A DNA stretch of 64,000 bases, from the NCBI GenBank assembly GCA_964199315.1, contig OZ116699.1, positions 29,822,001-29,886,000 on the forward strand, written 5' to 3'. Origin of the DNA: Orbicella franksi (Eukaryota). Positions 31,694 to 49,946 of the stretch are shown piece by piece; position 1 is the first letter of the stretch; each line of letters begins with the position of its first letter. Below the pieces are notes generated by a model. The model was not told where the DNA came from and did not search any database. It saw nothing but the letters and a program-made list of their open reading frames with translations. Both the position numbers and the translations under genes were made by a program.

Positions 31694-34600
31694 GGTCTAC
31701 CATTAACTCAAGCTTTAACAATGTGCACTTATTGCATATACAAGGGGATCCATTCTACAATCCCTATTTTGCTCTCAACAAGCAATCAAGAACACTGCAG
31801 AACAAAATAGCAATTAATACAATACAGGTATGAGTAAACAGTGATGTAAGAAATGACAAGAAATTTGATATTTTAGTGTAGCGTGATTTAAAGGCACCAT
31901 CCCTTTGGTCTGTTGAAACATTAAGCTAAAGATACTGAACACAAATGAGCAGTTCCAAAAAATATCCATACTCCCCCACAGAAGGGATTGGAATGTCCTG
32001 GGTGGTGGAGGGTTCTCTAAGATCAAAACATTTAAAGTAATGCATAAGCTTAATTGAAATCTTCAGAGGGGTCTTGGGGTCTTAGAAAAAATCTCTTCCT
32101 TGGGCAAGGTATGGATATTTTCTGGAACTACACATTATAGTAAATTTGATGGATTGATTGGCAGATTGATGCCTAATGATTGGTGTGATGATCAGTCTGT
32201 GCAGACAGTCTGCTACAAAATATTTTAAACTGAAAAACGAGACATTTAAACATTTTTCAGATGGGTTCACAACCAATTCATCAATGATTTAGATGGCTCC
32301 GGATTTGTTTAAAAGAAATCCGAAAGAATGATCTACTTAATAAAAAAATACCAAGAGGAGAAACTGCTACTAACAAAGGAGTTAGTAAGTTGTTTGCCAT
32401 AGAAGTATACAGTAGTTTCCTTTTTTGATGTTGCTATGACAACTAATTCTGCTTGTGGGGAAAATCTATATACAAGTTACAGGCTTATGCTAAAACTTAA
32501 TCTTAATTACTGAGGTAGCTGTAGTAGAGAAACAAAAACCAGAATTCCAGTAAATGATTTGTGCCACCTTAAAACCAGTGAAATTGTTTCCAAATTGGGT
32601 AAATATCTTATCAAGATGAAGTTAATGTCATCAACCTGGTGATAGTTTTAGCTTGTGAGAAACATAAACTGTCATAAGTGTCACAATTTTGTACTTTTGT
32701 GCTTTTACTGCTATTTTATCTTCTATTTCTGTTCACTGTCTTATGACTTTCTTGCAGGGAAATACTTCCTTCATTGGTACATTTTTGATGGCTGTCAACA
32801 AACAAAACCAGTCAAAAGTGAACACTTTGGTATCAAATCTGACATTTTTTATTTAGCATATGTGGATATATTTATATGAATATATGTGTCATCACTTGCT
32901 TGATTAAATTGTTTCATTTCAGGCTCTTGGGTTTGTGGGGTGGAGGAAAGGGGAATGATTTGACACCTATAATGAGTTCTGAAAGCTCCACCTTTTTCCA
33001 TCGTTGTTTGTGTTGGCTCCTCATTACTAAACTGAACACCTGGAACGGGCTATTGCCTAGTTACTGCTCACCCAAGCATGTGTTTTTCAAATTGCAAGTT
33101 GCAATATAATTTTTGAAATTATGATCAATTTTCACTGTTTAGAAACAACCAAGATGAAGTAACTCTCTCTTTGTCTTCAATCTCTCTTCTTGTATTTTTG
33201 ACCTATTTGTTTGTTTTCTTAATTCTGACTTTTACTACTGACCATGCCACTTTTAAAACAAAATCAGAACTTATAATATACAAGACTTTTAATCATCAAT
33301 CATTTCTTTTTCCACAGTATTGTGTGACGTACTGTATTGGCAACATCACTGAACTGTCGATGCATGAAGCCTGCTATGATTCAATCAGCTCAGAAGCCCT
33401 TCACGCCACTGTGAATGGTTCATTGTTGTCTCAGCATGTTTATGAATCAAATATCAGTCAACATGCATCTGTTGCTTACAATGTGCTGCAGCTTTCACTG
33501 ACACCTGGGAATCAGGTAAATCAGTAGCCACTCAGCTGTGTTCTTATTTGAGTGGATCTCCAACCATTTTTTTTAATTTACTGAGAGACATCCACCACAC
33601 GTGCGCTGCTCTTGGAACTGAAAATTATTTTTAATTTGAGGCTTAAAAATACATGAAATTAGAGGCTTTGTACTGTTATGCTTCAGTGTCTACTAACACA
33701 ATTAGAATATAACCCCTGGTTTTCTATGAGCGATAGTCAACTGACAGCTATGCCTCGTTTATTATTTATTATTTGCTTTTAGTATAAATCTACTAGCGTT
33801 CTATCACGAATGGCATTCCCTGATTGACTACGCTACTCACTATCTATTCTGTTGTAGATACTGTAGTGAATAGAGTAGCAGTGTGCGCTTGTTGGCAAAT
33901 TTGCGTCTGTGAAGAGGATTTAGATAAAGTTTTGAATGACTAGTAGATTTTGCACTAAAAGAATTAGATTATTTGCTCTCGATTTTTATGCGTGATAGTT
34001 GACTCGGGCTGCACCCTCGTCAACTATCACGCGATAGAAATCTCGAACTCATAATCTTATAGTTAAATGAAAAACTTGGGCTTGTAGTCTAATTGTTAAT
34101 TAGCTTACCCCTCATGTCATGCCTGCTGGCTTTTAACCTCTATATATTTGTGAAATTGTAGCTTGCCAGCCTTTAATTTGTCCTTTCATTGTAAAGCAAT
34201 TCTTTGAACCTCTGTAATTAATATGTCTCTGTTACCTTTACAATGAATTGAAGTATCTTTTTGTTCACTCTTAGTCGAACGTTACCTTTGCTCTCTTGGA
34301 GTGTAGTTCAAGACTGTTTTTTGTGGATGATAGAGGCGTGCTAAGAACTGGACGACAACTCGTTGAAGAAGACATTGCAATTCACGAGTTAAAGGTCGGT
34401 TGCATTGATTTTGCTATGAAGCCATATTCTTTGAGTGTTCCTACTCGTTTCTAGACCACTATGTAGTTATTAAGCATTAAAACAGTTTAAACGTGCTTAT
34501 GACATGAAATCTTTCTGTGATGATGATTTTTTCTTTTCACACTCTGTCCTTATTTCATTATAAACGTAAAGTGAACGCGTAATTGATAAACTCTATTTAA

Positions 34601-49600: not shown

Positions 49601-49946
49601 TAGGACGCGTACCGTCGAATGGACAGCTCAGTCCCAAACCTCGGACACTGATCTATCAGCGTTGCAACCACCTATGGATACTTCAGACCCTGAACGTTTG
49701 CAGCATACAAGCCCGTCGTGGTTAAGACGAGACAGTAGAGAACCGCTATCCTTGGACGAGACCCATGACAATGCAGCTGACGCCTCTTCCTCAGGGCTTT
49801 TGAGTCCGGAACTGTCGAGTCCACGAGTTTCAAGGCATGAAACATCGCATGCGGGTATTTGCATGCTGATGTCTAGTGTGAATAACCTACTCATCAGCGG
49901 AGAACGACCTCGCGATGACGACACAAGCAGTGAGTCCGATAAGTAG
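31694..49946 (+). CDS. Single-pass cadherin-repeat protein with giant repetitive cytoplasmic tail (>3600 aa; 5' end unresolved)
   Basis: In-frame GT-AG exons 31694-31827, 32758-32829 (these two less certain), 33318-33515, 34275-34394, 34895-35059, 35955-36025, 37088-37331, 37986-38211, 38868-38976, 40319-49946. Cadherin signatures AVDRDVG, TGEIKTAVALDRE, VATDQG, EDINDNRPVF, AEDKDTG, STSGELLL. TM helix SVALISGVSVGGVLFIAIIAVLSLWLW followed by stop-transfer KRRK. Confidence 0.85.
31946..32134. mobile_element. MITE
   Basis: Imperfect TIR TGAGCAGTTCCAAAAAATATCCATAC / GGTATGGATATTTTCTGGAACTACACA. Confidence 0.65.
33780..34070. mobile_element. Interspersed hairpin repeat, second copy of the 14276-14580 family
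   Basis: Collinear similarity to 14276-14580; hairpin GATAGTTGAC-TCGGGCTGCACCCTC-GTCAACTATC. Confidence 0.75.
34655..34842 (-). mobile_element. Diverged SINE, same family as 26454-26677
   Basis: Shares GGAGGAAA.C.GGAGAACC...AAAACCCTCG and GTGGGAGGCGAG...TCACCAC with the 26.5-kb copy. Confidence 0.6.
37445..37711. mobile_element. Palindromic MITE
   Basis: Ends GGGTGCG.TT / AAACGCACCC; imperfect internal inverted repeat around GAATCC...GGATTC. Confidence 0.55.
39745..40060. mobile_element. Interspersed repeat with degenerate hairpin
   Basis: AAGCACTTAATGACTGG...GAAACAGTGAG...CTCAATGT/ACATTGAG...TCACTGTTTC...GTGCTT forms an imperfect inverted repeat. Confidence 0.55.
40770..48990 (+). repeat. 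Coding higher-order repeat array in the cadherin tail (567-bp A units, ~585-bp B modules, 1719-bp AAB super-repeat)
   Basis: CTCTCAGAAGATGTATC-like unit starts at 41127, 41694, 42846, 43413, 44565, 45141, 45708, 47292 and 48927; spacings of 567, 576 and 1719 bp are all multiples of 3. Confidence 0.92.
49230..49545 (+). repeat. 171-bp in-frame tandem duplication near the cadherin C-terminus
   Basis: TCAAGGAAAGACGTTAGGCCTTTGCGACAGG at 49230 and 49401 (SRKDVRPLRQA...STSSTLASTT.SVSHHSPSRG twice). Confidence 0.9.

Follow-up and report, generated by a model that had tools for sequence, protein, structure and literature searches.

A stony-coral cadherin gene with a short ectodomain and a 3,208-residue, repeat-rich cytoplasmic tail encoded by a single exon

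The genome of the coral Orbicella franksi carries a cadherin gene in which the usual proportions of this superfamily are reversed. The gene lies in a stretch of 64,000 nucleotides (assembly GCA_964199315.1, contig OZ116699.1, positions 29,822,001 to 29,886,000), which we call the window and in whose coordinates all positions of the gene are given. It has 12 exons, 29710-49946 on the + strand, and its product has 3,702 residues, 3,208 of which (87%) lie past the membrane. Cadherins are usually viewed from the outside in, as large or diverse ectodomains with short tails that have known partners, whereas here most of the protein is a cytoplasmic tail that is predicted to be disordered. An earlier interpretation made from the letters of the window (the sequence-only reading) had proposed such an inverted architecture, with a small cadherin ectodomain, one transmembrane (TM) helix and a huge tail in a single exon; we recover it here and find it conserved in several stony corals. 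We know of no cadherin tail of this length.

Gene structure, transcription and ectodomain

The exon map was built from the first 560 residues of the Orbicella faveolata model XP_020608803.1. All 11 introns have GT-AG ends, and the translation differs from the model at 4 positions (Table 1). A genome search found the gene to be single-copy across its own 497-Mb assembly. The last exon belongs to an open frame at 40293..49946 (+) of 3,217 codons; counted from the acceptor at 40319 it measures 9,628 nt including the stop codon, exactly as previously proposed, and its G+C content is 0.45-0.48 against about 0.37 in the flanks. The start of the gene had to be moved: 31694, where the sequence-only reading placed it, is the beginning of exon 3, and the ATG and signal peptide are found two exons earlier, at 29710. 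Two open pieces at 27585-28219 (+), heptad-rich, coiled-coil-like and with a stop near 28220, appear to be the final exons of a separate gene, and because this same-strand gene ends near 28.2 kb no further cadherin exons should lie upstream.

The splice between the TM exon and the long exon is demonstrated beyond prediction. The TM exon ends in TG and is followed by a phase-2 donor, GTAAGC; the acceptor ..GACAG precedes the G at 40319, and splicing restores a W followed by K-R-R-K. A 287-nt contig from poly(A) RNA-seq aligns without a mismatch to 38883-38975 and 40318-40511, leaving out 1,342 nt that are bounded by GT..AG, and so spans the 38976/40319 junction on which the proposed architecture depended. 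RNA contigs were placed over the region from exon 7 to the beginning of exon 12. In the poly(A) runs exon 7 (contigs spanning 34893-35059, with unmatched flanks) and the start of exon 12 are covered, introns 35100-35899 and 38300-38699 have zero coverage, and one contig begins exactly at the start of exon 9, 37088, preceded by 26 unmatched bases. Fourteen RNA runs, drawn from several studies, have contigs with part of exon 12; in the best of these runs 63% of the sampled words are present. RNA contigs also pile up at 35900-36499 and 39700-40099, in introns 7 and 11, at depths from hundreds to 16,000; with their many mismatches, joints and loose ends they resemble abundant, transcribed copies of interspersed repeats and not exons of the cadherin gene.

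Pfam recognises Cadherin sequence at 37080-37391 (E 1.7e-7), at 37986-38231 (E 2e-9) and, weakly, in 34275-34451; the full protein model contains two PF00028 domains above threshold, with E 1.1e-31 for the protein. AlphaFold2, given 30 aligned sequences, predicts three beta-sandwich domains at model residues 127-440 with a per-residue confidence (predicted local distance difference test, pLDDT) of about 75-98. Confidence is low for the first 126 residues (pLDDT 30-45), since no more than three of the aligned sequences extend over them. Foldseek matches the confident part to fragments of three extracellular cadherin (EC) domains of cadherin-23, CELSR1 and protocadherins (TM-score up to 0.75, E about 1e-26 to 1e-23), and BLAST alignments to protocadherins cover query residues ~122-440 at 25-32% identity over two to three domains. 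At least two tandem EC domains are thus predicted, which places the gene in the cadherin superfamily. The ectodomain, of about 445 residues, is predicted to consist of three confident EC domains and a sequon-rich N-terminal region of some 125 residues (nine of the protein's 13 N-glycosylation sequons fall within the first 185 residues), which may be a fourth, divergent EC domain. The earlier count of about four cadherin repeats is fair but generous: three of them stand, and the low-confidence N-terminal region would have to supply the other. The calcium motifs of the last EC linker are LDRE 317, AVDRD 278, DINDNRP 352 and AEDED 383, and the preceding linker, IEANTFPPIF, is degenerate. A hydropathy scan gives a single TM peak at residues ~467-494, followed by KRRK, and shows the tail to be free of further hydrophobic stretches, in agreement with the single helix and stop-transfer sequence described before. 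By the positive-inside rule the protein would have type I topology, with signal peptide and ectodomain outside.

Repeats, disorder and relatives of the tail

The tail is composed of S 17.3, E 9.3, L 8.8, T 7.5, R 6.3, Q 6.0 and D 5.7%, with 5.5% proline; Ser and Thr together make up 25%, the isoelectric point is 5.2 and the grand average of hydropathy is -0.75. It contains about 100 S/T-x-x-D/E sites (CK2-type) and 34 R-x-x-S/T sites (basophilic). Its description as S/E/T/D-rich therefore holds, but the tail is a long-period repeat array and not simple low-complexity sequence. A Pfam scan of the 3,217-residue frame found no family at E<=0.01 in the tail, and the catenin-binding domain PF01049, whose absence had been remarked on from the sequence, has no match there at E<=1 and none in the relatives P0005 and P0007.

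The main repeats were found by a long-period repeat search and were missed by Tandem Repeats Finder, their period being >500 nt. Nine A units, starting at 40558, 41125, 41692, 42844, 43411, 44572, 45139, 45706 and 47290, are all in frame and 81-95% identical among copies, the first being more divergent (62-64%). The B unit, of ~200 residues, occurs in three to four copies; besides the one in Table 1 they lie at 43994-44640, ~46202-46760 and, in part, ~47950-48260. Because the two copies of a 1,719-nt block are >99% identical, the last duplication must be very recent, and dS is 0 between the repeat copies at 41691 and 43410. Recent repeat amplification thus appears to account for most of the tail's size. 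In outline the tail is a mosaic in which the repeat arrays are enclosed by a conserved juxtamembrane region on one side and a conserved C-terminus on the other. At the C-terminal end P0005 and P0010 are the same as the window tail; P0007 has the terminal acidic Ser/Thr cluster alone in common with it. AlphaFold2 on one A+B unit (17-row family alignment) gave a mean pLDDT of 42.5 and no secondary structure, with a small rise over the Lys-rich stretch, which is consistent with intrinsically disordered tail units, as had been supposed. A mucin-like, extracellular interpretation of the repeats was ruled out, since the repeats lie beyond the TM helix and KRRK and contain many charged residues and little proline.

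When the whole tail served as query, only two ENA open reading frames (ORFs) were matched, and it was a profile of the juxtamembrane region that revealed the family. This profile, run against 1.84 billion representatives, gave 13 matches, of which 10 are coral ORFs and the tick and yeast proteins are low-complexity noise; no sea anemone, Acropora or bilaterian protein was matched in earnest. The family therefore appears, in the searches made, to be restricted to stony corals. The gene proved not to be undescribed as a sequence. RefSeq XP_020608803.1 ('uncharacterized protein LOC110047401', Orbicella faveolata, 3,102 residues) is a full, automatically generated model of this gene or its ortholog, with the parts in the same order as in the window gene, from the signal peptide through the EC domains, TM helix and KRRK to the repeat tail. 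In Oculina patagonica, GenBank KAL9984863.1 (1,941 residues) joins ectodomain and tail, while RefSeq splits the gene into XP_078359851.1 and XP_078359850.1, one half labelled 'protocadherin Fat 1-like' (XP_078359851.1) and the other 'uncharacterized protein'. The models are thus public as an uncharacterised protein, and a literature search by their identifiers found no searchable paper that mentions them.

Cadherin exons followed by a single long ORF on the same strand were also found in four ENA assemblies: on two contigs of ERZ25067879 (3,093 and 2,035 codons), in ERZ25067872 (2,660 codons), in ERZ26858540 (1,183 codons) and in the more divergent ERZ25071797 (3,057 codons). A partial Pocillopora meandrina model has an ectodomain 49% identical and a different Ser-rich tail; it was the sole real relative in a search with the Oculina ectodomain, the other matches being generic protocadherins. 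A search with the 1,941-residue Oculina model was dominated by dachsous and cadherin-23, with scores that are many EC domains summed. The juxtamembrane region is 77-78% identical to that of the nearest relative, with a mean column identity of 89% in the alignment with P0001 and P0002. Gapped BLAST of the tails is uninformative owing to compositional bias, and an ungapped scan with 14-residue windows was used instead; it found seven to eight short motifs common to four distant tails (Table 1).

Downstream of the long ORF, the flanks of loci L003, L004 and L007 carry F5/8 type C, TSP_1 and Laminin_G_3 exons on the - strand, which suggests a conserved neighbour gene for an extracellular protein at these loci. 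At L002, 931-4875 (-), a retroelement (RVT_1 and a faint integrase match) lies ~5-9 kb before the long ORF, upstream of the cadherin exons; it is not present at the corresponding place in the window.

The amplified repeat unit differs from species to species, in tails of 1,200-3,200 residues, and long tails therefore arose more than once. In comparison with the nearest relative, three ectodomain exons have a ratio of nonsynonymous to synonymous substitution rates (dN/dS) of about 0.47 and the juxtamembrane region one of 0.53-0.59. Pairs of repeat copies give values from 0.35 to 0.93. The frame is kept open in every species, and from these figures the gene appears to evolve fast yet not neutrally, under selection that is relaxed but present.

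Comparison with known cadherins

The architecture, a short cadherin ectodomain with a disordered tail of 1.2-3.2 thousand residues, matches no cadherin subfamily whose defining features were testable. Classical cadherins (types I-IV) have PF01049 with p120- and beta-catenin-binding sites, of which the coral protein shows no trace at the threshold given above. The giants Fat, Dachsous and cadherin-23 have 27-34 EC domains and their bulk outside the cell, whereas the coral ectodomain is short and bounded by the upstream gene. In both sequence and fold the three EC domains are closest to those of protocadherins, CELSR and cadherin-23, but these proteins have 6-34 EC domains and relatively short cytoplasmic parts, in contrast to 3-4 EC domains over 11 exons in the coral gene. 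Clustered and delta protocadherins have six or seven EC domains, mostly in one large exon, and the coral gene, with three confident domains and the N-terminal region spread over its 11 exons, falls outside that group. CDHR5, a mucin-like protocadherin, is a single-pass protein with four EC domains and a long Ser/Thr-rich tandem-repeat region, but its repeats are extracellular and O-glycosylated, whereas those of the coral protein are cytoplasmic, charged-rich and low in proline. MARCKS-type basic-aromatic segments bind acidic lipids and are released by phosphorylation; the Lys/Arg runs, Phe and neighbouring Ser of the B unit resemble them in composition only.

The closest functional analogy is the desmoglein-specific cytoplasmic region, although the coral protein does not belong to the desmogleins. 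Desmosomes are confined to vertebrates, and the desmoglein repeat region, at a few hundred residues, is far shorter than 3,208. Desmogleins have a long disordered cytoplasmic region with tandem repeats (29 +/- 4 residues), whose tail-tail interactions stabilise the protein at the surface (PMC3494854). The coral protein shares with them a small ectodomain (in desmogleins 4 EC domains and an anchor) and the long disordered, repeat-bearing cytoplasmic region. It differs in that the plakoglobin-binding cadherin cytoplasmic segment of desmogleins was not detected in it by Pfam, and in that its repeats are 189 and ~200 residues long, against ~29, and unrelated in sequence. The cadherin known from coral skeletons, a skeletal organic matrix protein (SOMP), is of the classical type III, with 31 EC domains, laminin G and EGF domains and a catenin-binding tail, and it is the one cadherin recovered, out of 51 cadherin-domain genes, in three coral skeleton proteomes (PMC4890752); it differs from the window gene in every part.

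Possible function of the tail

The reading that we favour, with a probability of roughly 0.55, is that the protein is a receptor with an ectodomain for short-range adhesion or recognition and a tail that serves as a multivalent, phosphorylatable scaffold beneath the membrane. The amplified motifs are those conserved family-wide and the composition is that of phospho-regulated disordered scaffolds, and both argue for this reading, as do the Lys/Arg-Phe-Ser stretches, which resemble basic-aromatic membrane-binding segments. By multiplying the same short linear motifs, the repeats would let one receptor draw in the same partners many times over or form clusters with neighbouring receptors; the CK2-type and basophilic Ser/Thr sites could tune the scaffold via phosphorylation; and the polybasic-aromatic stretches (K-rich, F-x-L-F-G-R-K-K-K, Ser run) might tack the tail switchably to the acidic inner leaflet, as MARCKS-type segments do. 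A bolder version, which we consider doubtful, is that the tail is a self-contained junctional plaque: its own amplified motifs would give the multivalency that otherwise comes from separate plaque proteins, with phosphorylation-controlled condensation or clustering at a coral-specific contact between cells or of a cell with skeleton or symbiont. The number of repeats would in that case act as a tuning knob for the strength of adhesion, one that evolves quickly and may be polymorphic. The gene is a candidate component of an adhesion or signalling structure specific to corals, and coral tissue integrity bears on reef health. Independent enlargement of the tail with different units and the same motifs makes a natural experiment on the origin and tuning of multivalent disordered scaffolds, and repeat number, if it varies between individuals, would be a convenient and possibly functional marker.

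Several observations weigh against the scaffold, a function deduced from composition and motif multiplicity. Expression looks low, the RNA contigs being short and on some exons only, and canonical linker motifs occur in one EC linker only, so that calcium-dependent adhesion is not assured. Other observations bear on what we regard as the main rival, possible yet clearly less probable: a tolerated inflation of repeats, in which the ectodomain, the juxtamembrane region and the C-terminal motifs do the work and the arrays are minisatellite-like, at most an inert spacer whose copy number has no function. Three tail lengths occur within the same or sister species, namely 3,208 residues in the window, 2,608 in the model from RefSeq and 1,462 in a contig from ENA, and these tails differ in their repeat blocks. 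The latter two (P0014, P0003) are also without ~560 residues found near the C-terminus, at 48250-49200 of the window, bounded by ...QQENAPEET and ...SVSHHSPSRGY (an assembly difference of about 1.7 kb), and the length differences within Orbicella are either real alleles or assembly collapse. ERZ25067879 has, beside a long gene, a repeat-free ORF of 164 residues with the juxtamembrane and C-terminal parts only (L007, 10001-10495, ~16 kb downstream of the 3,093-codon gene and on the same contig as L001). No cadherin exon was called upstream of it in L007, so it may be a tandem mini-copy or a remnant, and the window's own genome has no second copy of this kind. Because tail length varies more than two-fold and this ORF lacks repeats, repeat number may not matter. 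The near-identity of the 1.7-kb duplication, the change of amplified unit between species and a dN/dS near 0.5, rising to 0.9 between some copies, which indicates weak constraint on much of the tail, fit inflation as well. What speaks against inflation is that all copies stay in frame across 9.6 kb, that tails of 2,035-3,208 residues have been built from different units in at least four genomes, that these units bear the motifs conserved family-wide, and that dN/dS is 0.35-0.65 for most copy pairs.

An anchoring protein of the junctional, ciliary or calicoblast-to-skeleton type, as the sequence-only reading suggested, is unlikely. A cadherin-type ectodomain in a calcifying animal and a family met only in stony corals would suit it, but the cadherin of the three skeleton proteomes is of another type, with catenin-binding sites (PMC4890752), the model identifiers occur in no searchable paper and nothing that we found points to any of these locations. 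Less likely still is a Notch-like signalling tail, released by ectodomain shedding and intramembrane proteolysis, in which K/R clusters beside acidic Ser runs act as regulated nuclear import signals. Such clusters exist (the KRRK at the membrane, and the K-rich stretch and G-R-K-K-K-K of each B unit, beside runs of the type S-S-D-D-S-D-D), and classical cadherins are known to release both ectodomains and intracellular domains by proteolysis (cited in PMC4890752); however, the Pfam scan found no DNA-binding or transcription-related domain, and a disordered chain of 3,000 residues is an improbable nuclear cargo. It is very improbable that the long frame is an artefact, that is, a separate gene, an untranscribed repeat or a misassembly wrongly joined to the cadherin exons. 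Repeat number does vary between assemblies and near-identical 1.7-kb copies are hard to assemble, but the spliced RNA contig links the TM exon to the long exon, and five other genomes have cadherin exons and long ORF in the same order with the frame open in all. For the join and the frame an artefact is excluded; the exact repeat count could still be wrong.

Table 1. Exons, tail regions and repeats of the cadherin gene in the window, and motifs shared by the tails of the family
Feature	Position	Strand	Evidence
Exon 1: ATG and hydrophobic signal peptide (MVLICPTAVVALFIV...)	29710..29779	+	tblastn 100% to XP_020608803.1 residues 1-23; GT donor
Exon 2, N-terminal ectodomain	30094..30165	+	XP_020608803.1 mapping; canonical AG/GT sites
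Exon 3, N-terminal ectodomain (first exon in the sequence-only reading)	31694..31827	+	XP_020608803.1 mapping, splice search
Exon 4, N-terminal ectodomain	32758..32829	+	XP_020608803.1 mapping, splice search
Exon 5: end of poorly predicted N-terminal region and start of first confident EC domain	33318..33515	+	mapping; conserved in L001
Exon 6, EC domain	34275..34394	+	weak Pfam Cadherin match; splice search
Exon 7: end of one EC domain with degenerate linker, start of next	34895..35059	+	poly(A) RNA contigs
Exon 8, EC domain with A-V-D-R-D..G motif	35955..36025	+	XP_020608803.1 mapping; GTAAGT donor
Exon 9: EC domain with LDRE and sole canonical DINDNRPVF calcium linker	37088..37331	+	Pfam Cadherin E 1.7e-7
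Exon 10, membrane-proximal EC domain	37986..38211	+	Pfam Cadherin E 2e-9
Exon 11, transmembrane helix	38868..38976	+	sequence; Kyte-Doolittle maximum residues 473-477; spliced RNA contig
Exon 12: KRRK stop-transfer, whole 3,208-residue cytoplasmic tail, stop codon	40319..49946	+	ORF, RNA contigs
Conserved juxtamembrane region: TPF-E/D-Y...EIYPPL, then S-H-V-S-L-D-L x3	40320..40787	+	alignment, profile search
Nine A units of 567 nt (189 residues), interleaved with B units	40558..47856	+	repeat search, translations
Tandem duplication, period 1,719 nt: 41300-42921 vs 43019-44640, >99% identical	41300..44640	+	longest exact run 634 nt
B unit 1: ETVSLPIV, polybasic K-rich stretch, YSKF-QE-SSDDS-D, F-P-L-F-G-R then K/R and Ser run	42275..42921	+	repeat search, motif scan
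Two copies of 171-nt unit (RPLRQ-KP..VLSDS motif)	49209..49545	+	Tandem Repeats Finder, 93% match; repeat family D12
Conserved C-terminal region THDNA.D.SSSGL...ETSH..ML.SS, ending in acidic Ser/Thr cluster	49761..49943	+	alignment A2
First AATAAA past the stop, candidate polyadenylation signal	50418..50423	+	sequence
Family motif 1: TPF-D/E-Y..I-C/Y-T..DT...EIYPPL			
Family motif 2: SYSEPSTP.KE.RR...SHVSLDL			
Family motif 3: ASF.S..GS..SLQS.RSQ.FQS.PSIEL			
Family motif 4: ETVSLPIV			
Family motif 5: K.YSKFQQE.SSDDSDD			
Family motif 6: KRF.LFGRKKK.SSS			
Family motif 7: SSTQQENAPV.TDQ			

Elsewhere in the window, an open piece at 25771-26019 (+) appears to be a relic of the core of a transposon integrase or transposase.

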